A DNA stretch of 64,000 nucleotides from Neoconidiobolus thromboides FSU 785. Lineage: Eukaryota; Fungi; Entomophthoromycota. Shown here one piece after another: positions 27,824 through 64,000 of the stretch (its first letter is position 1; every line of letters starts with the position of its first letter). Location of the stretch: NCBI GenBank assembly GCA_025603075.1, contig MU626283.1, forward strand, positions 96,795 through 160,794, given 5' to 3'. The translations under genes and the position numbers were made by a program. Below the pieces are notes generated by a model, which did not search any database, was not told the origin of the DNA, and saw nothing but the letters and a program-made list of their open reading frames with translations.

Positions 27824-28369
27824 TTAAAGACCAAGTCCTACACCGGCTCCAAGGCCTAATCCTAATCCTTTCCTGCCCCCTAATCCTAATCCTACTCCAG
27901 CTCCCAATCCCAATCCTAAACCATTATTGCTAGACCCATAACCAGAACCCGATGGTCCAGATCCATGACTAGATGATCCTGAGCCATAGACAGCTGAACC
28001 AGAGCCTGAAGTTCCATAATTCGATGATGAACTTGATACATAGCTTGATGACGAGCTAGATCCATAGCCAGATGCATGTCCATTACCTCCTAAACCTAAA
28101 CCTAAACCTAAACCTAAACCTAGTCCAAGGCCTGAGTTTGATCCATGACCAGATGAGCCTGAACCTGAACCTGAGCCTGAGCCTGAACCATAGCCGGATG
28201 ATCCAGATCCAGATCCAGATCCAGATCCAGATGCATGTCCATTACCTCCTAAACCTAAGCCTAAGCCTAAGCCTACTCCTAATCCAAGACCTTCAGCTTC
28301 ACGTTTAACTAAAGTAGGAGCAGCAGTGATAAAAGAGAGGATAGTAAGACTAATGATAAATTTGTTCAT
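27824..28369 (-). CDS. Secreted Gly/Ser-rich protein, family member A (signal peptide + KR-EAE + (GL)n blocks)
   Basis: MNKFIISLTILSFITA-APTLVKR-EAE; five further paralogs in the window. Confidence 0.85.
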   Translation of the reverse strand: MNKFIISLTILSFITAAPTLVKREAEGLGLGVGLGLGLGLGGNGHASGSGSGSGSGSSGYGSGSGSGSGSGSSGHGSNSGLGLGLGLGLGLGLGGNGHASGYGSSSSSSYVSSSSSNYGTSGSGSAVYGSGSSSHGSGPSGSGYGSSNNGLGLGLGAGVGLGLGGRKGLGLGLGAGVGLGL

Positions 28370-28708
28370 TTTTGATTATATTATAGTATATTATTATATG
28401 ATATTAAATAAAAGTTATTATTTTTTTGATATCTATTTCAATAATTTTTTTTGAGTATTTATACTACCGCTTTTCAATGTTTATTATAAAAATAGAACTA
28501 AATTAAATATTGCTTATAAAACCCCAGAGTTCGAATGTGAATTTGGAGTAATGAATATTGTTTTGCTTCCAGCCTTTTAGCTAAAGTTTAGTACACTAAC
28601 CTTTTATTTCTCATAGTTTAAAATTAGCCTTTTTTAGCTACCTATCGAAAAAATAGATTTCATGCAAAAAACTGCATAATTTCAGAAAACTACTCATTTT
28701 AGAAATAT

Positions 28709-28807
28709 GGGGATATATATTTTGTGTTTGAGAATTTTATTAATAATTTTTCTACTCAAATAGCGCTTAAGAAATGGAAAAAGTGATGAAATCAAAAAAA
28801 CATCACT
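28709..28807 (-). mobile_element. MITE copy 6
   Basis: Reverse-orientation consensus match; ATAT/ATAT flanks. Confidence 0.85.
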
Positions 28808-29782
28808 ATATAATATTTTTAATTTCTAAAACTTTGTTTTATATGAATTTTAAAATTTTGTTTTCATGTATTAGAAATTCCCTAATGTTTTTTCACTTTT
28901 TAATTCACTGCTTTTGTACTTAATCACTTTTAGTATATCTTTATTTAACCATTAGTAATGAACTAAAAACCCGGTAAAGTAAAACTTGATACTTTAGAAA
29001 ACTGGATATATTAGAAAAATATTAACAAGTCTTTAAGTAAGCTTAGTTATTAGATATTGAGTACTGAAAACAGATGAAAATAGTTTTTTCAAAATCATAC
29101 TGTTTCATGGAAAATGTCATATATAAGTAGCTTCAAAAATACGGATTAAAAATAAACTCCCTATTTTTATTACTTAGCTAACAGTACGCTTGTGATAAAA
29201 GTCCAAATGTACTTTTTTTAAAATGTTGAGAAGCTAAAATCAGAAAAGGCATCTGACTGGCGAGGGCAAAGTTCTTAATCTTTATTAATAGTAGTTATGG
29301 TCTATCTATTTACTCTGTATATTTGTAAGTATTTTTTTTATTTGAGATAAAGTCACTATTTACTTCTTCGTAATAGGTATATTTGAAAAAAATGAAAAGG
29401 TAAAGATTAGTAAAATACAAATAAAAATTAGGATTTTCTATTGAAAATACGACATAAAATATTTTTAAGGTTCAGAAAGACAGAAATGAAAAATGAATAT
29501 ATGACTAATGAATATTAAAAAACTAAAGAACTCTTAGATCCGTAAAAGCTAGATTCTAAGATAAAAAATGATGAAACAACCAAAAATAAAAACTTGATAA
29601 ACATTTTCATAGTTTTAGCAGCTTTCATATGGATAAACATATATTTTAGATCTCAATGTATAAAGATAATTGGTATATTTAAAAGCAGGAAATAATAAAT
29701 GATATAAAATATATTTTGTTTTATTTTAGTAAATTTGAGATACTTATTAATTGAAGATTAATGATGTTTTGAATAATAATAA

Positions 29783-29950
29783 TTAAAGGTCAAGTCCTAC
29801 ACCGGCCCCAAGGCCTAATCCAAGGCCTCCTTTTCCAAGACCAACACCAGCTCCTAAGCCTAAGCCTAAGTCAAGACCACCATGACCTGATCCTGAGCCA
29901 TAACCTGAAGATCCTGATCCTGATGATCCATAACCAGATGCATGTCCATT
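29783..29950 (-). CDS. Gly-rich family member B, 3' part only (5' end lost in assembly gap)
   Basis: Reads NGHASGYGSSGSGSSGYGSGSGHGGLDLGLGLGAGVGLGKGGLGLGLGAGVGLDL*; 64-nt identity with member G. Confidence 0.8.
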   Translation of the reverse strand, partial: NGHASGYGSSGSGSSGYGSGSGHGGLDLGLGLGAGVGLGKGGLGLGLGAGVGLDL

Positions 29951-30050
29951 NNNNNNNNNNNNNNNNNNNNNNNNNNNNNNNNNNNNNNNNNNNNNNNNNN
30001 NNNNNNNNNNNNNNNNNNNNNNNNNNNNNNNNNNNNNNNNNNNNNNNNNN
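29951..30050. other. Assembly gap (100 N)
   Basis: Run of N; sequence after the gap does not contain the missing 5' end of member B, so the true gap is longer. Confidence 0.98.
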
Positions 30051-30706
30051 AAATCTGATACTCAGTGATTAAAGTCAATAACAGCTATTGCCTGGTTGAC
30101 TATACTGTAAGTTGAAAGGTCTTAGATTGTGTGACTAAGATAGACTTGAATCATGAAGAATAGCATGTAATAGGCTATAGACTATGTAAGACAAATAGAA
30201 TAGACAATACTATTGTAAAATCTACGTAAAATATTATTAAGAAAACTTAGTGGCTTTATTAAATGTACGAGATATCAAGAAATAATTCAGTTAAAAAGCC
30301 TCAAATTACTATATTCTAAAATCTCTTTACACTCCGACAAGTATGGATATCAAAAGGAGAGGATAATATTATTTGGGATAAAGTTAGAAATTCTCATAAC
30401 AAATCAAAATAAGAACATGGGATTGATTTTCTCCGAACTCGAGAACACAACAACTCAAGTGATTATTATGTTATAATCAACCATGGAGCTGACAAAGCGA
30501 TATTTCATATAATAATAATACTTATTGATTTTATTGTATAGGCTGAAGTTACTTAAAATAACGATGGCATTATTACTACATATACATATATCGGTATTAA
30601 AACAATAAGCCATAAAATCGTTGCTATTTAAATAGTTCCTAGTTTCTAGTATCATTTTTGTTGAAAGGATTTTTAAAATAATTTTCATTTATTTGAAATA
30701 TTTAAT

Positions 30707-30804
30707 GGGGCCGTTTTTTTTCGATTTCATTACTTTTCCATTTTTTAAGCGCTACTTGAGTGGAAATATTGTTAGTAAAATTCTTAAATAAAAAATACAT
30801 CCCC
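30707..30804 (+). mobile_element. MITE copy 7
   Basis: Consensus match; TAAT/TAAT TSD. Confidence 0.85.
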
Positions 30805-31473
30805 TAATTCTTATTTTTCAAGCTAAAGAAAAAAGAATCATAACTTATAAAAAATTGAAGATAGTATCTATGTTAATAATTAAGCCTTTATAATTCATAA
30901 AGATCAGTCTTATTATCATTATAATATTTTTTGTTATCTCAATAATTTGCTAACAACTTAGCTTTTGTTAAAAAAAATGAAAATCTAATGAAAAAAAACC
31001 TTTGTATATTCTAAAAAACTCAGTTAATATATGAACAAATTGAAATGCTTTAGATAGCTTTTATAGCATTGTATAATTTAGTCTTTTCATATTAATTTTG
31101 TGAAAATAGTTTATATTATTTAAATATTGTTTAATTAAAACGCTTCTTTATTTTATTTTTTGTAAAAAATTAATAATTTTAAATTTGGATTTTAGGAACT
31201 CTTACTCATACACATAACAATAAAAGCTCAATAAAATCATAATATAAATATAAATTCAACTTTACTTCTATCTCTATCCCACCTACCACATATTACATTT
31301 ATATCTTACACATTTTATTTCTTCATTTCAAACTTCAAAAATAGCCAGCTCACAATTCCGAAATTTCAGCCACTAAAATTATTTAGATTGGGTTTAAAAA
31401 TCAAGTGATTTTTTAATGAAAAGAGCATTAACAAATTAATTTTTTTTTTTTTTTAATATTAATAAAAATAGTA

Positions 31474-34400
31474 ATGGTAGAAAAAAAATATAGTTTAAGA
31501 CTAGGTCAGTTAAAAAATGGCTCAATTCAAGTACCCAAAAGTATCTCTAATGCACTGGAAAATCATAAGGTAAATAGAGGGGTTTTAATAAGCTACCATA
31601 AACATTTATCATCTATTTACTGACTAAAATTCTCAATTTAGAATCAGAATGATTTAGTATTTGAGTTAAAATGGATTACTAGTCAAAACTTGGAAGAAAA
31701 AATATATGTTTCATGGAGTGGATTAAGTACAAAAACATTTGGAACGGAAGACGAATATATATTAATTGATACCAACTTTGCAGAATGTTGTAATTTAAGC
31801 TCAAATGATAAAGTTAAAATCAAAGTGATGGCTAAAGCAGTCAAAGCAGAATCTGTTGAAGTTATACCAAATTCAATTGAAGATTGGGAGGTTTTGGTAA
31901 TAGGTTTATTAAGATATTAGTAAGATTAAAAATCTTAATTTTTATTTAGCAATTGAACGCTGGCGTATTGGAGCTAGAATTTTTAAATCAATGTAGGGTG
32001 GTTAAAAAAGATCAAGTGATACCATTATGGGTAAGGGGTATTATTATTAAGGTTAAAGTAGGTAAGGAATTAAAAATAATAATAACTATGGCTTAAACTA
32101 ACACTATTTTATATTAGTAACTATTAAACCTGAGAAAGAGTTTATATCCTTATCTGAAAATAGTGAAATTTACGTTCAACCGTTACAAAAAAAAGAAGAT
32201 TTAAAAGAAGATATAAAGAAGAAAGATATTAAATTTCCAAATAAAATACTAAGAATTGTTACCGATAAACAATTTGATGATATTAAATTAAGAAATCAAC
32301 TTACAATTGTAGTCAACCCTAATTCAATACTAAATATTGAAGAAGGGTTAAAACAAAATATCCAATTTAATGAGTTCCCAAACTTAGGCAAAGTTGCTTT
32401 AATAAATAGAACAGATTTTTCTGAAGAAGATAGCAAAGTAAATCAAAAACAAAATAATACCAACAACCCTAATGTCACCGCCAATAATATCAATAGCAAC
32501 AAAAATAATAATCCAACTGCAACTAATGATACACATGCAAAAGTGAGTAGCTTGATGAAATTTACAAATAATAGCTTAATTGTAACAATTCAATGGGATT
32601 CAACATTGCCGAAAGGACATGTCATAGTATCCGATCAAATTGGATTGAATTTAAATGCCAATTTATTTTCAAGATTACTACTATCATTTGAATTGAATGA
32701 ACCTATTTTACCTAGACAATTAAAAATCAGAGCTATCTTTCCAGAATCTGGAAATAATAATGAGAATAAGTAAGTTTGTTATAATAATGTATTGTGTTTG
32801 TTGACTTTGTTTTTTAAAAATTAGAAAAAAAGTCGATTATTTACCTTCATTCATGAAATCAAATGTTACAGCTATAAATTCTAGCACCTGGATTACAACT
32901 TGTTTTTTAGGTAATTAATAATATAATAATTATATAATTGTATAATAGCATTACTTATGAAGAATGGTTAAAACTAAAGAATAATGAAGGTGAAAGTGAG
33001 CTTGTATTGACACATGGTATGATGATATCATTACCCAATAAAACGAATAATAAGATAAAGCATAATTTAATAATACAAATTGATCTTGGTATTTATGAAA
33101 TGACAGCCATTTATTTTAGCTATATGAAAGTGAAGAAATGGCTTGAATTAACGATAGTAGAAGATACAACAGCCTTATTTATACCAGCTAATTTATTTAA
33201 AAAAGAGCATTCATTAATGAAGGAATATAATAATTTACCTGATAAATTAGGGTCATTTGATAATATAATTAATGACTTGTTTGGATTAATTCGATGTTCT
33301 ATTTCGCCTTATTATCAACAATTAACTATGATTAATCATAAATCAATTGGTGTGTTAATTTGTGGATCAAAAGGAAGTGGAAAAACATCCTTATTGAAAA
33401 CAATTAAACATCAAATTGGAATCAACAAAAATACATTAATAAAATGTATTAATTTAGAATGTAGTACATTAATTAACGAAAGAGTCTCCAATGTTATTGA
33501 AAAGATAAAATTACAATTTTATGAAGCAGCATGGTATTCTCCAAGTGTATTATTTATGGATAATTTAGATACTTTAATACCAGCTGAAATGGAACATATG
33601 GATTCTTTTAGATATAAACAATTAGCAGAATGTTTAACGAATTTAATCTTACATTTTCGTAAAATTTATCCAAAAGTTACTACTATTGCTACAGCTCAAC
33701 AGTCTCAATCTATTCATCCATTATTATTACAATGTCATGTATTTACTAATACTATTCATATTAAACCACCTGGTAAATTAGAAAGACAAAAAGTAAGTTA
33801 TGTATTTATTTGTCTAATATTATTATAATGTTGTTTCATTTTATTTATTTGTTTAGATACTAGAAGCTATAATGAGTAGTAGTAATATTGATTCTGTTAA
33901 AAATAGTTTACCACAGATTGATTTAATGGCTATTGCTAGTTCAACTGAAGGCTACCTACCAGCAGATTTAGTCACTTTGACAGAAAGAGCAGTCCATCAT
34001 TCAGCTATTCGTCAGCTTACAGGTAAAATTGACAACCATGAAATAAATGAACCAATAATATCAAAAGAGCATGAAAATAAACAAATGAAATCTACTGTTC
34101 ATAACGAGGACAATAAAAAAGTCAATGGAATAGTAAAAACAGAGCAAGAAACTAACGAAAAGACAATACTATTAATCAATGATGACGATTTTAAAACAGC
34201 TCAAGAAGATTATATACCAGTATCTTTAAGAGGCGTGAAATTACAAAGTAGTACAGTGCGATGGACAGACATTGGGGGTTTAGAAGAAACGCGTAAAGTA
34301 TTAAGAGAGACCTTAGAATGGCCAATTAAATATCAAGCAATATTTACTAACTGTCCCTTACGTTTACGATCAGGATTATTACTGTATGGTTTTCCAGGAT

Positions 34401-35416
34401 GCGGTAAAACGATGTTAGCTAGTGCAATAGCTAAAGAATGTCATTTAAATTTCATTACTGTAAAAGGACCCGAGATATTAAATAAATACATTGGGGCGTC
34501 TGAACAATCAGTTCGAGATTTATTTCAACGAGCACAAGCAGCTAAACCATGCGTATTGTTCTTTGATGAATTTGAGGCTATAGCACCGCGAAGAGGTCAT
34601 GATTCCACAGGTGTAACGGACAGAGTAGTCAATCAATTATTAACGCAAATGGATGGAGCAGAAGGCCTAGATGGTGTTTATGTATTAGCAGCAACTTCAA
34701 GGCCCGATTTAATTGATCCAGCATTATTAAGACCCGGTAGATTAGATAAATCACTATTATGTCATTTACCAACAAAGTATGATCGTTGGATGATCCTTAA
34801 AGCCCATGCTAATAAATTTCATTTATCTGATGAATGTAATGAAAAATTGGAAATGGTAGCTGAAAAATGCGATAATTTTACAGGTGCCGATTTACAAGCT
34901 TTGTTGTATAGTTCACATTTAGAGGCAGTTCATGAGTCACTAGAAGGTAAAAACTACATGATGGGGAAAGAAGAGAATGGGAATAAAGAAGACAATGAAA
35001 GTGAGTTGTTTGTAGCTAAGATGGCTAAGGGGAGTAAAGAGAATACATTGACATTGGCTGAGATGGACAAGTTAAAAGGAAGAGTTAAAATCTTAATGAA
35101 AAAGAAAGGGAATGCGATAAATAATCATTCAAATGAAGAAGTAAATGGTAAAGTCAATGAGGATATAAATCAAGAAAAGAAAGGAAGTGGAGAAAAAATA
35201 ATAATTGAATGGAAACATTTATCTAAAGCAATGGGAGAAACAAATACATCATTACCATATAATGAAATTCTTAGGCTACAAGCAATGTAAGTTTACCTTT
35301 TAATTGATAATAATTTGAAAGATTTTTATTAATAATATACTTTTAGTTATGATGAGTTTCAATTCGGTAAAGGTGGGGATCCAGCGAAAATTGGAAAAAG
35401 AGCTACGCTTGGGTAG
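31474..35416 (+). CDS. PEX1: Peroxisome biogenesis AAA+ ATPase Pex1, multi-exon
   Basis: N-domain VEVIPNSIEDWEVL; D1 GSKGSGKT; D2 LRLRSGLLLYGFPGCGKT, FFDEFEAIAPRRGHDSTGVTDRVVNQ; C-terminus IGKRATLG*. Confidence 0.95.
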
Positions 35417-35688
35417 GAGATTGGAAAAGATGAAGTAGTTTTTTTGGCAGGAAATAAAAAAGTTTTATGTTTAGTTATGAAGTTTTGATGTTTTTGAGGT
35501 GAAATTTTGATTTTTAATGATTAGTAATAATTCTCTAAAATTCAAAATCTGATCGAGAATTAAGTTCGAAAATTTAAATTAAAAACTGGATAAATATTGT
35601 GAATTTTAAAGTATTGAATTTTATTCATTTTGAAATTATTGAAATTCAACTAAATATAAATATTATATTAAAAAAACAGAAAAGGAGA

Positions 35689-37703
35689 ATGGATTTTGAG
35701 CTCACAATAGAAGACTCAGATATTGAAACTTTAAAATTTGTCAATCAACCTTCGAATTCTCTATTATGTCCAGTGTAAGTTGATTTCACTTCAACTTAAT
35801 TCTAAGTTAAAATTAATAAAAATTTAATATTTATCAGTTGCCGAGATATATGTCATGAACCTTTAATAACCCATCGATGCCATCATTCTTATTGTGCAAA
35901 ATGTATTTATCAATCAATTAATATTGAACCATTTTGTCCATTATGTCGATGTCGATTAAAAAGTGAAGGTAAGTAATACTTAATCTTCATTCCAATTTTC
36001 AATTGAAATAAATTATTTAAAAAAACCATAAAAAACCAAAACTAATATTATTGTTTTTTCAGATTTACATCCCAACCTCGCACTTGCTTCTTTAATTAAT
36101 GAATTATTAGTTTATTGTAAAAATCAAATGTACGGATGTACTCAAAAAATACGTTTAGATGGTTATAAAGCACATATCAAAAGTTGTTTGTATACACCAA
36201 TAGAATGTCCAAATAAAATATATGGTTGTGAATTTCATGGTACATTAAAAGAAAAAGAAGAACATTTGAGAAATTGTGAAATACAAAAGATGCTTCCATT
36301 TATTAAAGTAATGGAAAATAGAATTAAAGGATTGGAAGAGAAAGTTTTGGTAAAGAGCTTTTGTATTTAGAGAATATGGATAAAAGTTTTAATAAATTGA
36401 TTTTTTAGGAGCAAAACAGAGAGTTGGAAAAAGTCAAATTGATACTGTCAAATAAAAACCAAAATGGAAGTGTTAATGGAGTGAGTAAAAAAATAGTCGA
36501 GATTAATAATGGAGCTTCAAGCTCCAAGCATAATATGATAGAAGATGAATTAATTGATCAGGTAATATAATAACAAATGAATAAATAAATCCACTATTTT
36601 ATTAATTTTATCTCAATACAAATAGCCTTTATTCCCTCACAATGATATTAAATTAGAACAAAATATAACTGGTCATACAAGTGGGGTAACCTCATTAGCC
36701 TATTCCAACGGTTTATTATTTTCAGGCTCTCATGACGGTAGTACTAAAATATATGATACTAATAATCAAAATCAAATTATTTGGGAATATAATACTCATT
36801 CTACATCCGTTTGGGGATTAACTGTATTTCAAGATGAAAAGCGATTTTTTACAGCTTCATCGGATAAATTAATTAAAGCTTGGGATTATAAAGAAGGGGA
36901 AAGAAGTTATAATCCAAGCAAAGTATTGGATCAACATCAGGGTAAGTTAATTAATCTAAATTAAATAAAATGTATATATAGGAGTCTATAATTATAAATG
37001 TATTGTTATTTTAATTTAAATTAGGCAAAGTTTATTCTTTATTATGTCGATTTGGAAAATTATTTTCAGGTTCAAGTGATAAAACAGTTAAAATTTGGGA
37101 TCCAAGAAGTTTAAATTTACAAGCTACGTTAATTGGACATCAAGACAATGTAAATTCAATTGTTGCTTTAAGAAATAATAAATTAGCTACAGGTTCAAGT
37201 GATAAAACTATCAAAGTAAGCTATATTTATTAATGTAATAATATATCAATTATATAATAATATATTAATTAGATTTGGGACATTTCCACTTCAACATGTG
37301 TTGATACTATTATTAGTAACGATAATGAAATATTAGATGTAACAATAAGTGATGATCAGGAATTATTGTTTGCTTCAACCTACGATGCTTCTATCTTAGT
37401 CTATTCTATGAGTGATAAAAAATTAATAACAACATTGAAGGGACATGACTGGGAAGTTTGGCAGGTAGTTTATTGTAAAGGAAAATTATTTTCTGGTTCT
37501 TTTGATCATACTATCAAAAGATGGGAACCTAGGATGAATCGATGTGATATGACGCTATATGGTCATAAAGGATTTGTACATTCCCTAGTTGTCGGAGATG
37601 ACAAGTTATTTTCAGGCTGTGCCGATAGGACAATTAAGGTAAGAGTTTTTAGAAGATATTATAAAAAATAGTAACCTAAATGTTTATTTAGGTTTGGAAA
37701 TAA
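35689..37703 (+). CDS. RING finger + TRAF/Sina-type zinc finger + coiled coil + WD40 protein (TRAF7-like E3 ligase), multi-exon
   Basis: C3HC4 RING CPVCRDIC..CHHSYCAKC..CPLC; DLHPNLALASLINELLVYC; CPNKIYGC; multiple GH...WD repeats (FSGSHDG, FSGSSDKTVKIWD, FSGSFDHTIKRW). Confidence 0.8.
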
Positions 37704-38544: not shown

Positions 38545-39400
<856 letters not shown>

Positions 39401-50786: not shown

Positions 50787-51582
50787 ATGCAATTCAACAT
50801 AATATTATTATCTTTTTATTTCGCTTTAAGCATTACATCAAAAACCAATAATACGGTAGTAAATAAAGTACCTGTAACAAGTCCAGTAGTATCAAATACT
50901 AATCCAATTCCATTGACTCCAAGTCCTACTTTGGAACCTTCGGATTTAGCTACTTATCATCAACCTACTGGATCAATACAAAGTAAGTATTTTATTACCA
51001 TAGCCTCTATATATGTGACTATATACCTAATAGCATAATAACAATAAAATAACATGATAATTCATACTAATTTTATTTTCAAATAGAGGATGATATCTCA
51101 GATAGTGTACGTGAAGAAACATGTCAAAATCAAACGAATTTTTGTGATAATGTATGTGGAGAAATCCAATCATTTGCTGTAGTTAATGAATGTAATACAG
51201 CTGATTTTAAATGGCGTTGTTATTGTAATAATGGGGTACAACCAAGTACTAAAAGTAAGTTTGTTATTTGTTTTTTATAAATGATATTTAGATTTATTAA
51301 CTTTTAATAGATTACACTTTCCCAGCTGAATTTGTTACATGTACTGAAACTATTAGAAGTTGCCAATTACGTTGTGGTTCCAATGCTTCCTGTTCAATTG
51401 GTTGTGCTAATTCCAAAAATTGTACTGTAGAAGACAATAATAACCACAGTAAAAAGAAATCTTCAATTTCAAATACAGCCACAAGTTCAAAGATACCCTC
51501 TATATTTTCTAATGGTAGTTTGAGTTCTCCAATTGCTATTTTAAATGGTTTATTGTTTGTTTTCTTTTTAATTGTTGGTTAA
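50787..51582 (+). CDS. Small secreted Cys-rich protein with probable GPI-anchor signal (3 exons)
   Basis: Signal peptide; spliced CQNQTNFCDNVCG..NECNT..WRCYCNNG..YTFP..C..CQLRC..CSIGC..C; Ser-rich spacer and hydrophobic C-terminus (ILNGLLFVFFLIVG). Confidence 0.75.
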
Positions 51583-54212: not shown

Positions 54213-54401
54213 ACACCGTAAATTAGTGAATTTAAATTAGATGTCTAATTTGCAACGCTACTAATTATTGATATTGACATAGATTTTACCGAATAAATAA
54301 TCAATAGAATATCATTTAAACATCGATAAAATAGAGATAAATTTTATTTTCATAGAATTAAAAATTAGTTAGCTATAAACAATAAACCAAATGCCAATAA
54401 T

Positions 54402-54749
54402 TTAGAGATCAAGTCCAACACCGGCTCCAAGCCCTAATCCAAGTCCTTCTTTTCCAGCTCCCGAGCCTAAACTAGCTCCTACTCCTACTCCTACTCCTAA
54501 ATCACCATGACTAGATCCATGACCTGAAGTATGGCTGGAACTTGAGCCGTAACTAGATCCTGAGCCTGAGCCGTAGTCAGATCCTGAACCTGAGCCATAA
54601 CTAGACCCTGAGCTTGATCCATGCTTACCACCCCCTAAGCTCAAACCTAAGCCTAAACCTAAACCAAGTTCTTCCGCTTCACGTTTAACTAAAGTAGGAG
54701 CAGCGGTAATAAAAGAAAGGATAGCAAGATTGATGATAAATTTGTTCAT
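54402..54749 (-). CDS. Gly-rich secreted family member D
   Basis: MNKFIINLAILSFITA-APTLVKR-EAEELGLGLG...GLGLGLGAGVGLDL. Confidence 0.85.
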   Translation of the reverse strand: MNKFIINLAILSFITAAPTLVKREAEELGLGLGLGLSLGGGKHGSSSGSSYGSGSGSDYGSGSGSSYGSSSSHTSGHGSSHGDLGVGVGVGASLGSGAGKEGLGLGLGAGVGLDL

Positions 54750-55656
54750 TTTAATGAACTATATTATAGATGCTATTAAGTATTAGATGATAATAATAAT
54801 TATTTTTTGATAACTATTATGAGAGTTAAGTTGGAGTATTTGTAGGATGAGCTATTGATATGCAATAGTAATAATTTTGTATATACATACTTTTGCTAAG
54901 TAAAACCCACCCTGAATTACAACTGTTAGTTGGAGTAATTATATTAATTTAGGGATAAATTTTTGACTTTGAAAATTTTGTAGTCAAGTACAAGTACTTA
55001 ATGCCAAGTTTTCAAAAATCGTAGTTTTGTCAATTTTTTAATTTTGTTGATTATGCACCCATTTTATTATATTACTAAAATCAAAGTTTAGTTTTTTAAA
55101 AATAATTATTACTATTACTATTATTAGTAATCAGAATTCCAATTTTCTTAAATGATCCTCTAACTCTTTTTGTTATATTTAAAATATGCTATTGAAATTA
55201 TTCTAAAAAAATTATTAATAAAAAAGAGGGGAAAGCAAAAAAATTTATATGGCCAAGCTTTGAGTTTAGTAAAAAAGCCATAAAGACTATAAATCAAGTA
55301 TACTAACTTTTAGAAACAGTCTCAAAGAAGTAATTTTATCTTAAGTAATAAATGTGGACTATTATTAATTTAGCTTTTGATCTAACCTTTGATGAATATT
55401 TATGTTATTATCTCAATTATCTTTATCCAAGTTGAATTTACAATATAGGCTCATTTTAGAAGATAGAGATAGCTGCCTATTTTTTAGGATTTATAAACTT
55501 AATACTACCTTTTAGCCTATTAGATTCTTCTAAGTAAGTAGTCTTCTAATTCAAAAAATAAGTTTTTATTTGCAATAGATTTTTTATTTCTATGCATCTT
55601 CAAACAAAAAAACACACTCTTATATAATAAAATTGTATAAAAATTGGTTCTGACAG

Positions 55657-55727
55657 TTTACTAACAATTTTTCTGCTCAAATAACACTTAAAAGGTGAAA
55701 AAAGTGAAGCTAAAAAAACATCCCCCC
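55657..55727 (-). mobile_element. MITE copy 15, truncated
   Basis: TTTACTAACAATTTTTCTGCTCAAATAAC...AAAAAAACATCCCCCC-ATAT; one terminus missing. Confidence 0.75.
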
Positions 55728-56102
55728 ATATATTGAGTATCAAACATACTGATAGGATGTTTTTATTAATTTAGTTAATAGTCTGTTCAACTTTTACGCT
55801 TGAAAAATGGAAAATTAAATAAACCAAATAGTTGCTACATTTGAATGGATTTTTTACACCATTATTAAAGCTGTGGAAAAATAGGTTTTATTTTTATAAA
55901 TGAAATATTGGAAAATTTTAATAAAAAGATATGTACATGTAAGGACTTAATTATGAAAATAGAACATAAAAAATAAACAATAAATATATTTATTTTTGAT
56001 AAATTAATCAAAACCATTAAGGTTGTCGGTTAGTAGCATACCAATAAGGCCTAAATGACAATAATTAGTATACATTATCTTAGATAACTATATTGAATAG
56101 AT

Positions 56103-56173
56103 AAAATCAGGTTGAAAAGGGGTTAGTAATCATTAAAGTTTCAGGTGAAACACGGAATTGATCATCATTTGGA
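56103..56173 (-). ncRNA. Box C/D snoRNA 5: D' guide to LSU UGAAACACGGA; D guide CCCCUUUUCAA
   Basis: C box ATGATGA (56168-56162), D' CTGA after TTCCGTGTTTCAC, D box CTGA (56110-56107). Confidence 0.85.
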
Positions 56174-56306
56174 TTAACATAGAATTAGATTAAATACTTA
56201 CATTGAAGAGTTATGAGTCATTATATGTTTAGTTTCAAACTATATTAGGATATCTATAATAGAAGATTAATAAATTATTCAAGAATAATAGTTAATAAAA
56301 ATTCAA

Positions 56307-56390
56307 TTCATCAGATAATTTGGTAAGAGATTTATTAGCTTCATACTTGCATCAGAAGCAGAACTGACAGAAAATCAATCATCACACAAA
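56307..56390 (-). ncRNA. snR61: Box C/D snoRNA 4, snR61/SNORD38-like (LSU Am1133, yeast numbering)
   Basis: C box GTGATGA; D' guide TCTGTCAGTTCTGCTT-CTGA complementary to LSU AAGCAGAACUG; CTTACCAAA complementary to the adjacent UUUGGUAAG; D box 56314-56311. Confidence 0.85.
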
Positions 56391-56507
56391 ATTAAAAAAT
56401 TAAAAGTCGAAATAAGTACCTACCTTATTACATTTGAATTGTAATTGATAATCTAATGAGTATAAATTAGAATGATATTCTCAATAAAAATTAATGATAT
56501 TAATAGA

Positions 56508-56608
56508 AATATCAGTAACTATCCGGTTTGAATGTCTTTGGATAGGAATATAGAGCTTATCTTCAGAACTACTCAGAGCCCAGTGCTCAAATCTTTTCAT
56601 CATTTGAT
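56508..56608 (-). ncRNA. snR76: Box C/D snoRNA 3, snR76/SNORD88-like (LSU Cm2197, yeast numbering)
   Basis: C box ATGATGA; D' guide GAGCACTGGGC-T-CTGA complementary to LSU GCCCAGUGCUC; GACATTCA complementary to the adjacent UGAAUGUC; D box 56515-56512. Confidence 0.8.
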
Positions 56609-56699
56609 GAATAGGATAAGAATTGAAATTATTACTTACATCTAATAAAATAAGATTAATATAATGTTTAATATAAAATTATTTAAATTAAATAGAATC

Positions 56700-56793
56700 T
56701 GGCTCAGAGTGGTGCATGCATTGAATTGTAATCATTAGTGATTGCTCTCATTAGATTCTTAGTTCTATGGTTAATTGCATTCATCAACGCCAA
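56700..56793 (-). ncRNA. snR40: Box C/D snoRNA 2, snR40/SNORD32-like (SSU Gm1271, yeast numbering)
   Basis: TGGC/GCCA terminal stem; C box TTGATGA; D guide CATGCACCAC-T-CTGA complementary to SSU GUGGUGCAUG, +5 rule gives G1271. Confidence 0.82.
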
Positions 56794-56929
56794 CATTCTA
56801 TTCTCAATTTAAATGAAACATTTTACTTACCATTTAATCATCATGACAGTATAATAATAATGTCTGTGTTTAACATCTAATAAAATTAAATTAGTAAAAT
56901 GATCAATTAAGTATTTGACTATCATAATA

Positions 56930-57016
56930 ATCCTCAGTTGGTGATGCATGTAAAAGATTGAAATCATTAATGATCATATAGTTAGTTCTATGGTTGAATA
57001 TGTATCATCACATACG
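56930..57016 (-). ncRNA. snR55: Box C/D snoRNA 1, snR55/SNORD33-like (SSU Um1269, yeast numbering)
   Basis: C box GTGATGA (57011-57005); D guide CATGCATCACCA-A-CTGA complementary to SSU UGGUGGUGCAUG, +5 rule gives U1269. Confidence 0.82.
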
Positions 57017-58311
57017 GAAACATAGGTAAAGAAATTAACTTACATTATATACTTGATTTAGGAGCGAACAAACTTAGTTGCTAAATATAAATATACTGAC
57101 CTTAGCTAAGAAATATACTTTTATATTTTCGTTGTGGGATAGAACTAAGCTTAGGACTAAAATTTAGCCAATTAAATAAAATTTAGCTCTATTCAGATCG
57201 ATTGATTGACTTGGATTAAAACATTATGGGAACCTTTTGAATCGAAAATTGGGATTGAATTCAAAGGAAATTTCAAGAAAACTAAAGTTCAAATTCTAAA
57301 TCAATAGTTAGATAATATAATTAGACAGTTACTATTGTATATATCTCAACAATTTATTTAGATTATTATTTTGTAATACTCGTTTTCTCTTTTACTCTTT
57401 AAATTTTATAAATAAATAACAAGTTTGAGTTTAAATTAAGTCTTTATTTAAAGTAAGCAGCTAATTTGAAATATACAGTTTTTTATTCAACCATAATATT
57501 TATTTGATCCTAAAAACCACTCAATTTGGAATTTAGAATTTAGAATTAACAGAGTAACAAACTGAATTACATTTTAATAATTTAATATGTAAAAATAAAA
57601 TTTCAAAGCTGCTAACACTAAATTTTTATATGTAAAGAATAGTGATTATATTTAAAGACTGCTTATTAAATATATTATTGGCTTTAAAAGCATTTATCTT
57701 AGATATTAAACTTTTTGATGATAATAGTATTATGAGTTATCGATTCTATTATTTTAAAATATCTTAATAGGAAACAAATATTACTTTTTTTAATATTAAT
57801 GACTTAATAAGTATTTTACTATAATTCACTTGGATGATATGTCTTATTTGAAAATTATCAATTGTTAAAAAGATATTAAAAGTTGAAACTTAAATTTTTG
57901 AAAAAAATCATAAAATTTAATTTTAATAAAAAACCTCTTAATTGAAACTATTATTTATATTAAAATAATATTGTGTTTAGAAATAATAATCGAAACTTTC
58001 ATTTAAAATGAGATAAACTTTAATACTCCTATTGCTGAACTTTTGTATATTTTAAACTGATAACTTTGCTCAATCTATTTCTTTTAATAAATGTACTTAT
58101 TTCAATAGAATTCTCAAATTGGTAATGTCAAGTATTTTATTAATGTCAAATAAAAAAGTTAATTAAGATTTAATCAAATTCTTTGACTATCTTGGAACCT
58201 TTTCATAACACATAAGTTTAGTTATCATTTAAAAAATAATAATACCCTTTCTAATGTTGATGCATTATCTTTAAAAAAGTTATTAGAGGTTCTAAAATAG
58301 AATCTTCAAAT

Positions 58312-58410
58312 GGGGATGTATTTTTATATTTATGAGCTTTACTAACAATTTTTTTTACTAAAATAGCGCTTAAAAGATGGAAAAAGCGATGAAGTAAAAA
58401 ACACACACCC
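58312..58410 (-). mobile_element. MITE copy 16
   Basis: Reverse consensus match; AAAT/AAAT TSD. Confidence 0.85.
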
Positions 58411-58917
58411 AAATTCTATTAAATATAAATGCTAATTAAAATAAAAAATTTCAATGCAAATGTTAATATAAAATAAAAGTACTAATGTTTACTTAAAATA
58501 AGCTTAGAAAACCGTTTAAAAAAATAGCATTGAGGGTTAAAAAATCAACTTTGATAAAGAGGTGATCAAATATAGTAATCATCTAATGTAAAACTAACAA
58601 TACTTGAAATTAAAATATTGTTTGCTATTAAATTATACATAAAATTTCAATAATAGTTTATTTTTTAAATGAAAATAGTTGCTAGTTAATAAATCAACTT
58701 GCGTTCTAAAGCAAGTTAAAATTAGCTATGAAACATAAAATAAATAAATGTTAAAATGGAATAATAAAGCTGTACTTTGAATATACTTTATAATATGCTA
58801 TAATGATAGAACTATTAGGTTACTAGTCTTACTCAAATAATACAATAAGAATAGTATAAGGGTATATAGAAATGAAATCTATAAAGACATATCAATAACG
58901 AAAGAAATTCAATATAT

Positions 58918-59012
58918 GAGGGTGTATTTTTTTGTTTAATTTTGCTAACAATCTTCCTACTCAAATAGTGCTTAAAAAACGGAGAAGTAATGAAATCAAA
59001 AAAAGCATCCCC
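58918..59012 (-). mobile_element. MITE copy 17
   Basis: Reverse consensus match; ATAT/ATAT TSD. Confidence 0.85.
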
Positions 59013-59172
59013 ATATCATCTATAATAAATGGAATAAAGGATATTTAAATATACACTTTAGTATATAAAAATAAATATAACTTGGGGCCTTAAAGGATAA
59101 TTAGAAACTAAGAATAAAACTAAAAATTAAAAAAAAATTAAAACATTTAATTTCACTGAGTACAATCAGAGA

Positions 59173-59180
59173 TATAAATA
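59173..59180 (+). promoter_or_regulatory. TATAAATA box conserved 84-95 nt upstream of Gly-rich family starts (also 28456-28463 minus, 61851-61858 plus, variant 54837-54844 minus)
   Basis: Same octamer at the same spacing in all four members whose 5' ends are visible. Confidence 0.6.
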
Positions 59181-59256
59181 CTCTGATAACTCTACCAAAT
59201 AGCTATTAAATTAAAAATAAATTTATTTCATATTAAATTAATATCATATCTTAAAA

Positions 59257-59730
59257 ATGAACAAATTAATCATTAATCTTGCCATTGTATCTTTTATCGC
59301 TGCTGTGCCAACTTTAAATAAGCATGAGGCTAATACCCTCGGTTTAGGTGTAGGAGTTGGTGTAGATTTAGGCTTGGGTTTAGGGTTAGGAGGGAAGTCA
59401 GGACATAAGTCAGGGCGTAACTCAGGATATAAAACAGAACATGGTTCAAAACCAGAATATGATTCCAATTCAGGGCATGGTTCAAAACCAGGGTATGGAC
59501 CAGATTCAAACCCAAGATATCCTGCTTTAGTTAAGCGTGAAAGTGATACTCTTGGGTTAGGAGTAGGAGTAGGAGTAGACTTAGGTACAGGTTTAGGTTT
59601 AGGTTTAGGAGGCGAACCAGAGCATGAATCAGGATATAACTCAGGATATAATTCAGGATATAATTCAGAATATAACTCAGGGTATGGTACAAACAATAAC
59701 AAAGGAAATTTACTTAGTATTCGACTTTAA
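59257..59730 (+). CDS. Gly-rich secreted family member E, two-module precursor
   Basis: Signal peptide, LNKH-EANTLGLGVGVGVDLG... and internal LVKR-ESDTLGLGVGVGVDLG... Confidence 0.85.
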   Translation: MNKLIINLAIVSFIAAVPTLNKHEANTLGLGVGVGVDLGLGLGLGGKSGHKSGRNSGYKTEHGSKPEYDSNSGHGSKPGYGPDSNPRYPALVKRESDTLGLGVGVGVDLGTGLGLGLGGEPEHESGYNSGYNSGYNSEYNSGYGTNNNKGNLLSIRL

Positions 59731-59779
59731 TTTTATCTAATTACAACTCAACTACTTATTCTATTTGAAATAAAGATAT

Positions 59780-59876
59780 AGGAGTGTTTTTTAACTTCAT
59801 TGCTTTTTCCATTTTTTAAGCGCTATTTAAGTGGAAAACCTGTTAGTAAAATTCTTAAACACGAAAATATATCCCC
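59780..59876 (+). mobile_element. MITE copy 18
   Basis: Consensus match; ATAT/ATAT TSD. Confidence 0.85.
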
Positions 59877-61241
59877 ATATAGTCAAATCTATTTATTTTT
59901 TATAATTATATTTAAATAGTTAAAATTATATAACATGTCTAAAAACTATCCCTATAGTTCTAGCGTTCACTTTTAAAGCTTGATTTTTTGATAGTTAACA
60001 TATAAAAGTGTAGCACTTTTTATAATCTAACTGAAAGTGAATAGTACATTTATCATAAAGGATAAAATAGTATATCTAGCTATTCATTGTTTTATTTGAT
60101 CCGAAATTTGCAATATATAAGTGTTATGGTTTTAATGGCAGCTAAGTATTGATAAAAAGTTTCGAAGGAATTTAGATTGAAATTTGAAAACTTAATCACT
60201 TTGCACTTAGTATTAAAAGGAGTAATAAAGTTTATTGAAAATGAAAGTTGATTAGTTCGAAATGATAATTGTATCATAATAACTTAACATTTTTAAATAA
60301 TAATGTAAAATTTAACAGAACGCAAAATCAAATTTATAGCTATTTTTATTTTAACATTTTATCTTGAGGCTAATAATCTTAATATAATATTTATTTTCTA
60401 ATAATTCACTTTTTAGCTATAATTTTCAAGGTGATAGTATTGTCTTACTAACCTTTTGAGTGTCAGACACTTCAAAAAATCCTGTTTGACGGGATCATGA
60501 TTTCTAATAGATTTTACGCCAATTGGCTCAGTTTTTTTTAAACTCAATATTTAAAGGGTTAATTTAGTTTCAATCATGGGGGTGGAGCAATGTTCACCAC
60601 AATCAAATTTTAATCCAAGATTGGCGAACAATATTCGTTCACAGTACTCAAGTGGTTAACAAATTTTAAAAGGTAATAGAGATTTAATTAGATCTTTTAA
60701 AGCTTTTTTAGAAACTACGAATTGAATATCCAGATCACTACTATTTTTAAGTTAATACCCTTCATGACCTTGATATATTTTCTTTATTATTGTTTATGTT
60801 AAATATCTAATGTTAGACGCTAAACAGTTGTAGAATAGTTACCAAAGGCTTTGAAAATCTCTTTTGAATCCGGCTGTTGCAGCTCTTTTGCGAACTATTT
60901 AGTAAGTATTTTTATAGTAAATAAGTTATATAGCTGATTTTTTTTAAAAGCTGTTGCTTCTATTTGGTGAACTATAAGGATAAGTAATACTCTTAAATCA
61001 ATAGTTAAAAGTTTCGTGAAAGGCCCGTAATAGATGTATTTGATACAAATGCTTCATTCAATCAAATGGGCTTTTTTTATGTGCAAAATTTAGCTTAAAA
61101 ATCAGATAAGTAATATTAAATTAACATAAGAAACTGATTAGAAACATTTTCATAAATTGTTAAATAACATATGCCAAAAAGAGAAATTGTCTAATATAAA
61201 AAAATAACAGCCAAATAGAATTTTCATGATTATCAGCATAT

Positions 61242-61339
61242 GAAGGATGTATTTTTTGTTAACAATTTTACTAACAATCTTTCTGCTCAAATAGCACTTA
61301 GAAAATGGAAAAAGTGATGAAGTCAAAAAAAACATCTTC
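61242..61339 (-). mobile_element. MITE copy 19
   Basis: Reverse consensus match; ATAT/ATAT TSD. Confidence 0.85.
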
Positions 61340-61637
61340 ATATACAAAAAAAGTTCAGTAATATTTTATTTTTAGCTGAAAATAAATGTAGTTAGCTTAA
61401 CCTACCTGGTTTAGAGGTTAATTTAATTTATGAAACACAAAAATATTAAATTCATATTGAAAAACGATGTCAGGCTTTAATGTGATCTAAAAATGTAATT
61501 ACAAAGAAAGTGATATACTACATTTATTAAAAATTATGTTATAAAGCATTTAAGAATGTACAGAAATAAAATTTATAGAAACATTAGCATGATAAAATTC
61601 ATCTAGCATAGTGCATAGTACCAAATAAAAAATAGAT

Positions 61638-61721
61638 GAGGGCGTTTTTTTTAAGAAATTAACTACTATTTTCTACTCAACAGTGCTTAAAAAATACAAA
61701 GTAATAAAATCAAAACAGTCC
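61638..61721 (-). mobile_element. MITE copy 20, strongly degenerate
   Basis: TTTTCTACTCAA..AGTGCTTAAAAAA..AAAGTAAT core retained. Confidence 0.6.
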
Positions 61722-61940
61722 TAGACAGTTAAATTACGACTCAGTAGTTAAAATTAGACAATGGCTTGAGATCTTAGAAATTACTTAAGCCAAAAACTAA
61801 AAATAAAAAGTTAAAATTATGCTACTAGCTTTACTAGGAATATTAAAAGGTATAAATATGTAGATGAATTGATCAAAAAAATTATCAAAATACAAATACA
61901 AATACAAATACATTATATTAAATATAAATTATCTCTTAAA

Positions 61941-62378
61941 ATGAATAAATTCATCATTAGTCTTGCTATTGCTTCCTTCATTACCGCTGCTCCAACTTTA
62001 AACAAACGTGAAGCTAATACCCTTGGATTAGGAGTAGATTTAGGCTTAGGTTTAGGTTTAGGAGGTAAACCAGGATATGGTTCAGGATATGGCTCAAACC
62101 CAGGATATGGTTCAAACCCAGGATATGGTTCAGGATCAAGTGGTAATGGAGTAGGAGTAGGTGCTGGAGTAGGAGTAGGAGTAGGTGGTAATCCATTATT
62201 AGGAGTAGGTGCTGGAGTAGGAGTAGGAGTAGGTGGCAATCCATTATTAGGAGTAGGCGCTGGAGTAGGAGTAGGAGTAGGTGGCAATCCATTATTAGGA
62301 GTAGGTGCTGGAGTAGGAGTAGGTGCTGGTAATAAACCAGGATACAACTCAGGATATAACTCAGGATACGGATACTGA
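61941..62378 (+). CDS. Gly-rich secreted family member F
   Basis: True start is MNKFIISLAIASFITA at 61941; APTLNKR-EANTLGLG; PGYGS repeats; GVGAGVGVGVGGNPLL repeats. Confidence 0.85.
   Translation: MNKFIISLAIASFITAAPTLNKREANTLGLGVDLGLGLGLGGKPGYGSGYGSNPGYGSNPGYGSGSSGNGVGVGAGVGVGVGGNPLLGVGAGVGVGVGGNPLLGVGAGVGVGVGGNPLLGVGAGVGVGAGNKPGYNSGYNSGYGY
62154..62330 (+). repeat. Coding tandem repeat, 48-bp unit x3 plus partial (GVGAGVGVGVGGNPLL)
   Basis: Near-identical 48-nt units read directly. Confidence 0.9.
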
Positions 62379-63717
62379 ACTAATTTAGGTGCTAAGATTG
62401 GACTTTGATTTTACTCAATCACAATTCAATCAACTATCTTATTTATAATAAAATGCCTTCAACTTTATTGTAAAAATTATTCAAATTCTATATTTAAGTG
62501 CCAAAATCATTTTTTTATTGTAACACATTACAAATTTAGCTTAAATTAACTTTATATCTTAGAATTTATAGTATTATAACACATTATCTCAATACTTTAG
62601 GCCATATGCCTACTGTAATTACTTAATGTCTAAACAATTTCAAGTGCTTTAATTATTGTGCCTGGGAGAAGTAAAATAGGTTAGCATTTCTGGATTGTTT
62701 TAATAATAAGGTTGTTCTGGGAAGTATGTAAAATTTCAATATAGTCCTACTTTTTCAGAAAGCAATAGACAAGAGGTTGCACCGTTTGGTTACTAAAAGT
62801 GGAGGTTTTTCAATCTAAAGCATTGACAACTGTGCAAAGAGAAAGTGATAATTAAGGAGACCTGCGAAGCTGCTATAGACCTCGTAAAAATCACTAAAAC
62901 AATTAAGGCTTAATAATATAAGATAAAAGAAAATACAGTCAAGTACCTGGTTCTGTTAAACGTATTATGTAGTTTAAAACTTTTAGTCTGGGGTTTATTA
63001 AAAAATAAAATAAAAGTTTAAGAAGCTACTGTTTTATAAAAATCCCAATTTTATGATATAGCTGATAAGAATTATCATAATATGTATATCTGATCATTTA
63101 GGTATTATAACAATCTTACAAAGCACAAAGCACAAATCATTCTGAGCTGAATTTAACTAGAAATGTTTTAAGATAATAAAATTATTATATAGATAGATGT
63201 TTGAAATAATATAAAAAGAGCGCAAAGCATTACAAAACATTAATTTATTTATAATTTAATGTAACATAATTAATATACAGTTGACTTCGTTCCTAAAAAT
63301 GGGTGATATACTATTTTATCTGATATGAAAAACAGATTGTCAAATTTAATCATGCTTCTATTAAGTTCTCAATTTTAAAGGACTTTAAAACTCTATATTC
63401 CTTGGCTTTGATATTATAAACTATGGCTTAAAGGATTATAACAAAAGCGATAGGGATTCAAAAGTAATAAGGATGATATTTTCAAAGTAGAAATAAAAAT
63501 ATGCTGAAAGTATTAACACTCAAAAATAGCTGAATATATATTTAATAAATACTAGCACTTGAAATTTATATTATTCGAATAATTAGTATTGATAATAAAT
63601 CATATAGTAGATACAAAAAGTGTAAAATGTATAATCTTTCAAAATATTTTTTGTTTTATTTTAGTGAATTTAAGATAAAGATTAGTTAAAGATTATTGTT
63701 GATTTGAATAGTAATAA

Positions 63718-64000
63718 TTAAAGGCCAAGCCCTAGACCAGCTCCAACACCCAATCCAACACCACCTTTTCCAATACCTACACCAGCTCCCAAGCCTAAGC
63801 CTAAGTCAAGACCACCATGACCTGATCCTGAGCCATAACCTGAAGATCCTGATCTGTAACCTGATCCTGATGATCCATAACCAGATGATCCAGAGCCAGA
63901 TGCATGTCCATTACCTCCTAAACCTAAACCTAAACCTAAACCTACTCCTAACCCAAGGCCTGAATTTGATCCATGACCAGATGAGCCATATCCTGATGCT
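63718..64000 (-). CDS. Gly-rich family member G, 3' part (runs off window end)
   Basis: ...SSGHGSNSGLGLGVGLGLGLGLGGNGHASGSG...GHGGLDLGLGLGAGVGIGKGGVGLGVGAGLGLGL*. Confidence 0.85.
   Translation of the reverse strand, partial: ASGYGSSGHGSNSGLGLGVGLGLGLGLGGNGHASGSGSSGYGSSGSGYRSGSSGYGSGSGHGGLDLGLGLGAGVGIGKGGVGLGVGAGLGLGL

Follow-up and report, generated by a model that had tools for sequence, protein, structure and literature searches.

In Neoconidiobolus thromboides FSU 785 (assembly GCA_025603075.1), the 64 kb at the end of scaffold MU626283.1 carry, between positions 27824 and 64000, six paralogous, intronless genes for glycine-rich proteins, four of them complete and two present as 3′ fragments. 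Positions refer to the window, that is, the whole 64,000-nucleotide stretch analysed, and equal the record position minus 96794. To judge from their sequences, the six loci are a real, selected gene family of small secreted proteins, in which a common leader precedes a mature part organised as a block copolymer, with strictly alternating Gly-aliphatic blocks set between polar spacers. The products may be a self-assembling material of the fungal surface.

Members of the family and evidence for selection

The members, and the assembly gap that affects one of them, are as follows.

27824–28369, minus strand: member 27824, 181 amino acids, complete
29783–29950, minus strand: member 29783, the last 55 amino acids and the stop codon; a 3′ fragment, its 5′ part lost in a run of N
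54402–54749, minus strand: member 54402, 115 amino acids, complete; the shortest member with all features
59257–59730, plus strand: member 59257, 157 amino acids, complete, with two modules
61941–62378, plus strand: member 61941, 145 amino acids, complete
63718–64000, minus strand: member 63718, at least the last 93 amino acids and the stop codon; a 3′ part, cut by the scaffold end
29951–30050, no strand: assembly gap (run of N) that truncates member 29783

The four minus-strand genes among the six are named by their stop-codon ends; in member 61941 the longest open reading frame (ORF) begins at an upstream TTG (61869), the conserved ATG being at 61941. An earlier note on this DNA, made from the sequence alone, had placed a six-member family at these positions, and both the ORFs and a six-frame scan agree with it. 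In that scan of the AT-rich window (GC 0.18–0.32), runs of at least three Gly-(Leu/Val/Ala/Ile) units are confined to the six family loci and the start MNK(F/L)II to the four complete genes. Neither leaders nor Gly-aliphatic runs were found in positions 1–27000 of the window by six-frame scan or tblastn; a tblastn search of the window with the leaders brings up, beyond the known members, just the internal module of 59257, and no further gene with the family leader was found elsewhere in the window.

Constraint on these sequences is visible in the leader, where 25 of the first 45 alignment positions are common to all four complete copies. Pairwise comparison of leaders over 25 codons gives ratios of nonsynonymous to synonymous divergence (dN/dS) of 0.07–0.30 at proportions of synonymous differences (pS) of 0.28–0.65, and the hydrophobic block at the C-terminus of minus-strand members gives 0.05–0.39. 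An internal segment of 33 codons compared between 27824 and 63718 has a dN/dS of 0.23, and the two modules of 59257, compared with each other, have 0.15 at a pS of 0.58 and a proportion of nonsynonymous differences (pN) of 0.14. Leader and blocks thus range overall from 0.05 to 0.39 at pS of 0.2–0.65; the segments are short, so that individual dN/dS values are rough, and their direction is uniform. Purifying selection acts on the leader and on the Gly-aliphatic blocks, and the duplicates are old. Low dN/dS at near-saturated synonymous distance indicates that it is the protein sequence of the blocks that is maintained and that they are more than products of slippage, while perfect 6-nt arrays within some blocks (28089–28122, 63917–63944) and a 48-nt array in 61941, with copies 97% identical, indicate that recent slippage adds length variation on top of this constraint.

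Transcription signals are conserved alongside the coding sequence. A TATA box of the TATAAATA type lies 84–95 nt upstream of the ATG in all four complete members, and an AATAAA poly(A) signal is found about 60 nt 3′ of the stop codons.

28456–28463, minus strand: TATAAATA box of member 27824, 94 nt 5′ of the ATG
54837–54844, minus strand: equivalent box of member 54402
59173–59180, plus strand: equivalent box of member 59257
61851–61858, plus strand: equivalent box of member 61941

Gene calls on record for 27824, 54402 (115 amino acids) and 59257 (157 amino acids) have lengths identical to the ORFs; 63718 has a partial call of 90 amino acids, and 29783 has none. The absence of introns, claimed in the earlier note, follows from the uninterrupted ORFs of all six members and matches these three calls. 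At 61941 the sole recorded call is a Pro/Thr-rich antisense reading of 154 amino acids (61913–62377, minus strand), and no recorded product is identical to the plus-strand ORF. The record has probably chosen the wrong strand for this gene, since it is the plus strand that bears the family leader, the TATA box and the poly(A) signal. G+C content at third codon positions (GC3) is low, at 0.14–0.24, and one antisense frame uses the same third positions; GC3 fits a coding phase and cannot tell sense from that antisense frame, and it was therefore dropped as strand evidence, leaving strand assignment to the leader and the promoter and terminator signals.

Traces of transcription come from runs that were presumed, by guess, to be RNA and that are kept as assembler contigs, with contig depths of 2–9. 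Run X2 has two contigs on 27824 (27837–28073 and 28292–28385), one at 63572–63886 that spans the 3′ untranslated region (UTR) and coding sequence of 63718, and depth over 61941 at 61978–62148; run X1 has a contig on 61941 at 62238–62315. The run X6 contig on 59257 (59293–59519) contains an in-frame 24-nt insertion at 59394/59395, which amounts to one extra KSGHKSGY unit and is repeat-number variation between strains or samples. The presumed-RNA contigs lie on ORFs and one 3′ UTR, dispersed repeats have high depth in the same runs, and the unique intergenic bins of both examined stretches are at zero, a pattern that weak transcription fits better than DNA carry-over does.

Member 29783 is treated as a 3′ fragment because no contig bridges the gap at 29951–30050, contigs of three DNA runs ending at 29885 or 29843 and one beginning at 30051, and because the right flank of the gap (30051–30520) consists of a dispersed repeat whose depth is 30 to 1400 times that of single-copy sequence and in which neither a Gly-rich frame nor a leader was found by six-frame scan and tblastn. 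The other parts of the finding are independent of any reading across this gap. The closest paralogue of 29783 is 63718, their 3′ UTRs being 84% identical over 77 nt, and the architecture of 63718 matches that of 27824. The locus also occurs, at about 99.5% identity, in DNA runs whose labels name two other organisms, which shows conservation of the family at least in close strains.

Protein architecture and predicted processing

The leader begins with Met-Asn-Lys, continues with 11–12 hydrophobic residues and reaches a group of small residues (T/A-A-A/V) before a Pro; by inspection, Lys3, the length of the core and the small residues fit a signal peptide without a transmembrane domain. A pro-piece of seven residues follows, A-P-T-L-(V/N)-K-R or, in 59257, V-P-T-L-N-K-H, with Glu-Ala next. 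The leader alignment thereby upholds the common signal peptide, and the pro-piece ending in LVKR, LNKR or LNKH before EA, that had been reported for the four complete genes. The alternation of Gly-Leu/Gly-Val blocks with polar spacers, likewise reported, recurs in the features listed here.

Member 27824, minus strand, from the ORF: signal peptide at amino acids 1–16/17, then the pro-piece APTLVKR with its KR at 28301–28306, then EAE
28247–28291, 28088–28132, 27878–27922 and 27827–27868, minus strand: the four (G-φ)7 blocks of member 27824, φ being aliphatic, from the pattern scan
54681–54686, minus strand: KR of member 54402, from the ORF
54474–54503, minus strand: Gly-Val block of member 54402, preceded by a Gly/Ser/Tyr/His spacer
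54405–54446, minus strand: C-terminal block of member 54402, from the pattern scan
59320–59325, plus strand: K-H of the leader of member 59257, from the ORF
59533–59538, plus strand: K-R that ends the internal pro-piece copy of member 59257, from the ORF
59341–59391 and 59554–59610, plus strand: Gly-Leu/Gly-Val blocks of member 59257, one per module, from the pattern scan
62004–62009, plus strand: KR of member 61941, from the ORF
62025–62063, plus strand: Gly-Leu block of member 61941, with PGYGS spacers next
62152–62323, plus strand: array of member 61941, 3.6 copies of a 48-nt (16-residue) unit made of a Gly-Val/Ala block and GGNPLL

The hydrophobic blocks are 13–19 residues long, mostly 14–15, alternate strictly between Gly and an aliphatic residue (Leu/Val/Ala) and usually end in Gly-Gly. 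Spacers consist of Gly, Ser, Tyr, His and Asn, with Pro in addition in 61941 and Pro, Lys, Glu and Asp in 59257. The mature parts of the six members contain no Cys, as the earlier note had stated, and no Trp, Phe or Met either; Gly makes up 25–44% of them, aliphatic residues 19–28% and Tyr 3–7%, and in five of the six the mature part is nearly uncharged (K+R 1–2, D+E 1–6). Two subtypes can be told apart. Minus-strand members have Gly-Ser spacers and a block at the C-terminus (ending AGVGLGL or GLDL), whereas the plus-strand members start with N-T-L and have PGY/NSGY spacers and a polar C-terminus. In 27824, Gly/Ser/Tyr/His spacers lie between the blocks and the last block is the end of the protein. 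The first Gly-Leu block of 54402, LGLGLGLGLSLG, occupies amino acids 27–38 directly after EAEE and was recognised by inspection, the pattern scan having missed it. The spacers of 59257 are charged (Lys, Glu, Asp) and its C-terminus is made of NSGY repeats and a non-repeat tail; NSGY repeats also form the C-terminus of 61941.

Each protein contains one K-R, placed directly after the pro-piece except in 59257, where the sole K-R is internal and the leader has K-H; the only further basic pair is an RK in 27824. The sites read T-L-V-K-R or T-L-N-K-R at amino acids 19–23 of 27824, 54402 and 61941, and A-L-V-K-R at amino acids 90–94 of 59257. In fungal secreted proteins processed at a pro-domain, the extended Kex2 motif has Arg at P1, Lys at P2 and Leu or another aliphatic residue at P4, and it is expected in the N-terminal half of the protein, behind a short disordered stretch (PMC8528282). 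This motif is present in the leaders of 27824, 54402 and 61941 and at the internal site of 59257, and is absent from the K-H leader of 59257, which has no P1 Arg as needed by Kex2; as read from sequence, the family fits the class of Kex2-processed pro-domain (K2PP) proteins (PMC8528282). KR followed by EA is, in addition, the Kex2/Ste13 pattern of alpha-factor (PMC6339444). Four of the five sites are followed by Glu-Ala and the internal one of 59257 by Glu-Ser, so that a Ste13-type X-Ala signature is recognisable, albeit a weak one, consisting of one dipeptide only, which is shared by descent.

The earlier note had taken the proteins for Kex2/Ste13-type peptide precursors. Of this, the single L-x-K-R/E-A pro-protein site stands, but the release of multiple peptides does not, as there is one dibasic site per protein. 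Kex2-processed repeat proteins (KEPs) are defined by at least four fragments after in silico cleavage at KR/RR (or KK) and by repeated cores between the sites (PMC6339444), and a single KR per protein falls short of that number. The sequences thus describe pro-proteins predicted to release polymers of 9–15 kDa, and not multi-peptide precursors of the alpha-factor or Rep1 type. In 59257 an internal P-x-L-x-K-R-E and its matching block have been copied and retained, which suggests that cleavage motif and block act together as a functional module and that 59257 may yield two chains.

Proposed function and alternatives

By analogy, the family is tentatively favoured to be a secreted, kexin-matured and self-assembling amphiphilic β-sheet material of the surface, the wall or an adhesive. 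The proposal draws on composition, analogy and a low-confidence structural model, and it starts from observed features, namely the genes, their selection, leader, motif and architecture and the traces of transcription; cleavage, β-sheet assembly, location and role are what we infer from these. The function suggested in the earlier note, an amyloid or coacervate coat, an adhesive or a hydrophobin substitute, possibly stabilised through Tyr or His cross-links, is plausible on these grounds. The classical signal peptide, with Lys3, a hydrophobic stretch of 11–12 residues and small residues ahead of the cut, would route the chain into the endoplasmic reticulum, a Golgi kexin would cut after the L-x-K-R of the pro-piece, and a dipeptidyl aminopeptidase may trim the Glu-Ala that follows. 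The product would be a disordered, Cys-free block copolymer of 9–15 kDa that has hardly any charge in most members. The strictly alternating Gly-Leu/Val/Ala blocks, about 14 residues in length, could form β-strands with one all-aliphatic and one all-Gly face, whereas the Gly/Ser/Tyr/His/Asn spacers would stay hydrated, the Ser-rich ones probably being O-mannosylated, and their Tyr could be cross-linked. Outside the cell, the hydrophobic blocks would pair into sheets, and an amphiphilic film, fibril or gel would result, whether at the wall, on spores or within an adhesive, with a role comparable to that of repellents, hydrophobins and silk- or elastin-like materials. In an AlphaFold2 (AF2) model of 61941 the four Gly-aliphatic blocks appear as strands and the spacers as coil; an Atlas model of 27824 is disordered, at a predicted local distance difference test (pLDDT) score of 0.33.

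Several points weigh against this proposal. No experiment or homologue links the family to any function. The AF2 model is of low confidence (mean pLDDT 45.5), and the evidence of expression is thin, with contig depths of 2–9 in libraries guessed to be RNA. The leader of 59257, with His at P1, should not be cut there by kexin. The members lie dispersed among housekeeping genes, where wall or sporulation genes that might provide a context are absent, and alternating blocks of about 14 residues would also suit insertion into membranes.

Neoconidiobolus thromboides is an entomophthoralean insect pathogen, and a more specific form of the proposal, unlikely as it stands, is that kexin-matured (Gly-Leu/Val)7 sheets would make up a hydrophobic or adhesive coat that sticks discharged conidia to waxy insect cuticle, with glycosylated, Tyr-bearing spacers hydrating the coat and cross-linking oxidatively. 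Coating and adhesive proteins govern the water repellence of spores, their dispersal and their sticking to hosts. If the proposed material exists, it would join hydrophobins and repellents as a third and independent solution among fungi, Cys-free and found in Entomophthorales, and a compact natural template (9–15 kDa, no Cys) for amphiphilic β-sheet biomaterials.

The same blocks could belong to membrane-active peptides, antimicrobial or host-directed, whose Gly-aliphatic strips insert into the membranes of competitors or insect cells. Gly/His-rich antimicrobial peptides are known from arthropods and plants, and the Gly/His/Tyr spacers would resemble them; a small, secreted, Kex2-primed and fast-evolving multigene family in an insect-pathogenic fungus would suit such a role, as would the variable repeat number seen in the X6 insertion and the 48-nt array of 61941. 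Alternation of hydrophobic and small residues over about 14 positions also suits a membrane β-strand, being glycine-zipper-like and capable of forming β-hairpins. Yet the essentially uncharged mature parts of five of the six members are unlike cationic antimicrobial peptides, there is no folded carrier domain as in β-pore-formers, the long Ser-rich spacers resemble an O-glycosylated matrix, and no toxin-like match was found in PDB or Pfam, so that membrane activity is considered unlikely. An improbable reading is that the proteins are Ser/Gly-rich glycoproteins bound covalently to the wall or through a glycosylphosphatidylinositol (GPI) anchor, in which the Gly-Leu C-terminus would be a removed anchor signal and the blocks would not self-assemble. 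All four minus-strand members do end in a 14-residue hydrophobic block after small residues, and fungal wall mannoproteins have Ser-rich stretches like the spacers of the family. The residues before the tail (G-R-K, G-K-G-G, G-K-E) form, by inspection, a spacer of 2–3 residues and are unfit for small omega+1/omega+2 positions, however; in two members an Asp stands two residues from the C-terminus, a hydrophobic tail is missing from both plus-strand members, and like blocks also occur internally and N-terminally.

True multi-peptide precursors of the KEP, Rep1 or alpha-factor type, with several short Gly-Leu peptides per protein serving as surface amyloid or signals, are held to be of similarly low probability. 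What speaks for them is the KR-EA after the leader in three members, the internal pro-piece motif of 59257 that ends in KR and precedes the second copy of its block, and the basic residues, alone or in pairs (RK, K, KE), that lie between the final block of minus-strand members and the one before it; the RK and single-K spacers, however, have no P1 Arg after a basic or aliphatic context and are non-canonical kexin sites, each protein has one KR (in 59257 one KR and K-H), and the four or more fragments expected of KEPs after KR/RR cuts are not obtained (PMC6339444). It is highly improbable that the loci are non-functional low-complexity ORFs, raised by microsatellite-like expansion and annotated by chance. 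The perfect 6-nt arrays, the long antisense ORFs (one of them recorded as a gene), the inability of GC3 to separate sense from that antisense frame and the very low RNA depth would all agree with such an origin; against it stand dN/dS values much lower than 1 in leader and blocks where synonymous divergence is high, an ATG, signal peptide and pro-piece conserved in four copies, conserved TATA and poly(A) signals that match the sense strand, length variation that stays in frame, and RNA contigs restricted to ORFs and a UTR. Roles beyond those set out here have a small chance of applying.

The members of the family are spread over 36 kb among housekeeping genes, their neighbours encoding a double AAA ATPase, a TRAF/Sina-WD40 protein, a RanBP2 zinc-finger protein, S-adenosylhomocysteine (AdoHcy) hydrolase, DUF7707, rhomboid, Maf, SOD and LSM proteins and a phosphatase. 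Gene calls and domains of these neighbours include no tailoring enzyme, in keeping with the earlier note, and with no repeated cores in the proteins a reading as peptides made by the ribosome and modified after translation (RiPPs) was rejected. A gene call of 373 amino acids with DUF4097 (PF13349; about 25356–26477, minus strand) lies about 1.3 kb upstream of the 27824 start on the same strand, an adjacency that may be coincidence. The ORF at 50787–51038, with a signal peptide and Ser/Thr/Pro, is the first exon of a 211-residue DUF7707 gene call (50787–51582, plus strand) and is unrelated to the family. Dispersed repeats resembling miniature inverted-repeat transposable elements are located at 28640–28907, 30051–30520, 30650–30917, 58940–59010, 59800–59880 and 61260–61340; their depth in DNA runs rises to 30 to more than 1000 times that of single-copy sequence, RNA runs contain them in abundance, and they flank several members, one of them abutting the assembly gap.

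Relatives and comparison with known systems

A match to a characterised family with another function, which would have spoken against the earlier note, was looked for in Pfam, PDB and by phmmer, and none was found, in collections that lack the family itself. Pfam-A hmmscan of the four complete proteins returned nothing relevant at E up to 1, the profiles for plant glycine-rich proteins (GRPs; PF07172), insect chorion (PF01723) and cuticle proteins included, and phmmer against 1.84 billion representative proteins gave 0 hits. A word-indexed protein search found no relative with the leader and, with the whole of 54402, one chance bacterial match (E 0.13); PDB sequences gave linker-type and low-complexity matches only, and scans of JGI metagenome contigs with leader and C-terminal patterns found no relative. 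By exact look-up, the protein collections hold the AdoHcy hydrolase of the window and none of the four complete family proteins, so that the blank searches are weak evidence for restriction to the lineage. Low-complexity proteins may be under-represented in large protein collections, which weakens no-homologue results for such families. For annotation, the family offers a small lesson, in that the call for one member is probably on the wrong strand, another member is lost to a gap and large protein databases have no entry for the family. The nearest neighbours in language-model feature space are fibroin-like, plant GRP, cuticle and chorion proteins, with scores of 0.55–0.60 that make them leads only.

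Outside Dikarya hydrophobins are rare, a survey having found them in one of six Zoopagomycota genomes (bioRxiv 10.1101/2022.08.19.504535), and they appear to be rare in Entomophthorales; a selected secreted Gly-Leu/Gly-Val family would be a simple and testable candidate for a role that replaces them there. The family shares with hydrophobins the character of small secreted fungal amphiphiles and, as proposed, the coating of surfaces, but the pattern of eight Cys and four disulfides is absent (0 Cys in six members) and there is no Pfam hydrophobin match. Residues 72–104 of 61941 show a weak local match to the hydrophobin 5w0y (E 5e-4 over 33 residues, a Gly/Val/Asn-Pro loop), which is a low-complexity coincidence, and with 0 Cys in the family hydrophobin homology was rejected.

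Silk fibroin with its alternation of Gly and Ala/Ser, the hydrophobic domains of elastin and lamprin, silkmoth chorion, and the glycine-rich structural proteins of plants and insects are all built with Gly at every second position and a small or aliphatic partner. The family resembles them in this, in placing Gly/Ser/Tyr spacers between potentially β-forming blocks, in having Tyr available for cross-linking and in its block-copolymer logic. It differs in being fungal and, by prediction, kexin-primed, in its far smaller size (9–15 kDa) and in a partner residue that is mostly Leu or Val and not Ala, and it has neither elastin-type Pro-Gly pentapeptides nor Lys-Ala cross-link domains nor a Pfam GRP or Chorion match.

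The likeness to the K2PP/alpha-factor leader (PMC8528282; PMC6339444) extends to the signal peptide, the short unstructured pro-piece ending in L-x-K-R and the X-Ala that follows. In contrast to those systems, however, the cargo is a low-complexity block copolymer and not a folded effector or pheromone, the pro-piece has just seven residues, one member has His at P1, and cleavage is here a prediction. Kex2-released peptides of Rep1 form amphipathic amyloid on hyphae (PMC3133707), and the family is like Rep1 and the KEPs (PMC3133707; PMC6339444; PMC7329392) in being secreted, Cys-free and apparently kexin-primed and in the amphipathic β-sheet or amyloid on aerial surfaces that is proposed for it. 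Whereas Rep1 yields 11 peptides on cleavage and KEPs require at least three dibasic sites flanking repeated cores, the family has one site per protein (internal in 59257), and there is no sequence similarity.

The kind of protein is known, that of secreted proteins of the glycine-rich structural type that have a Kex2 pro-domain, and a Cys-free block-copolymer material system of this particular kind was not found in the literature searched. The strict Gly-Leu block chemistry is unusual, because a Gly-Leu repeat of this type was described in 2013 as unique to magnetosome proteins (PMC3742261). The strict (Gly-Leu)5 run is what the family has in common with Mms6, Mms7, MamG and MamD; in Mms6 the (GL)5 motif is necessary for self-assembly, which a change from GL to GA disrupts (PMC3742261). 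The magnetosome proteins differ in being bacterial, membrane-associated biomineralisation proteins with one block each and without the signal/pro leader or the spacer architecture, and they are not homologous to the family; were the proposed assembly to hold, the fungal proteins would represent the first eukaryotic use of this repeat.

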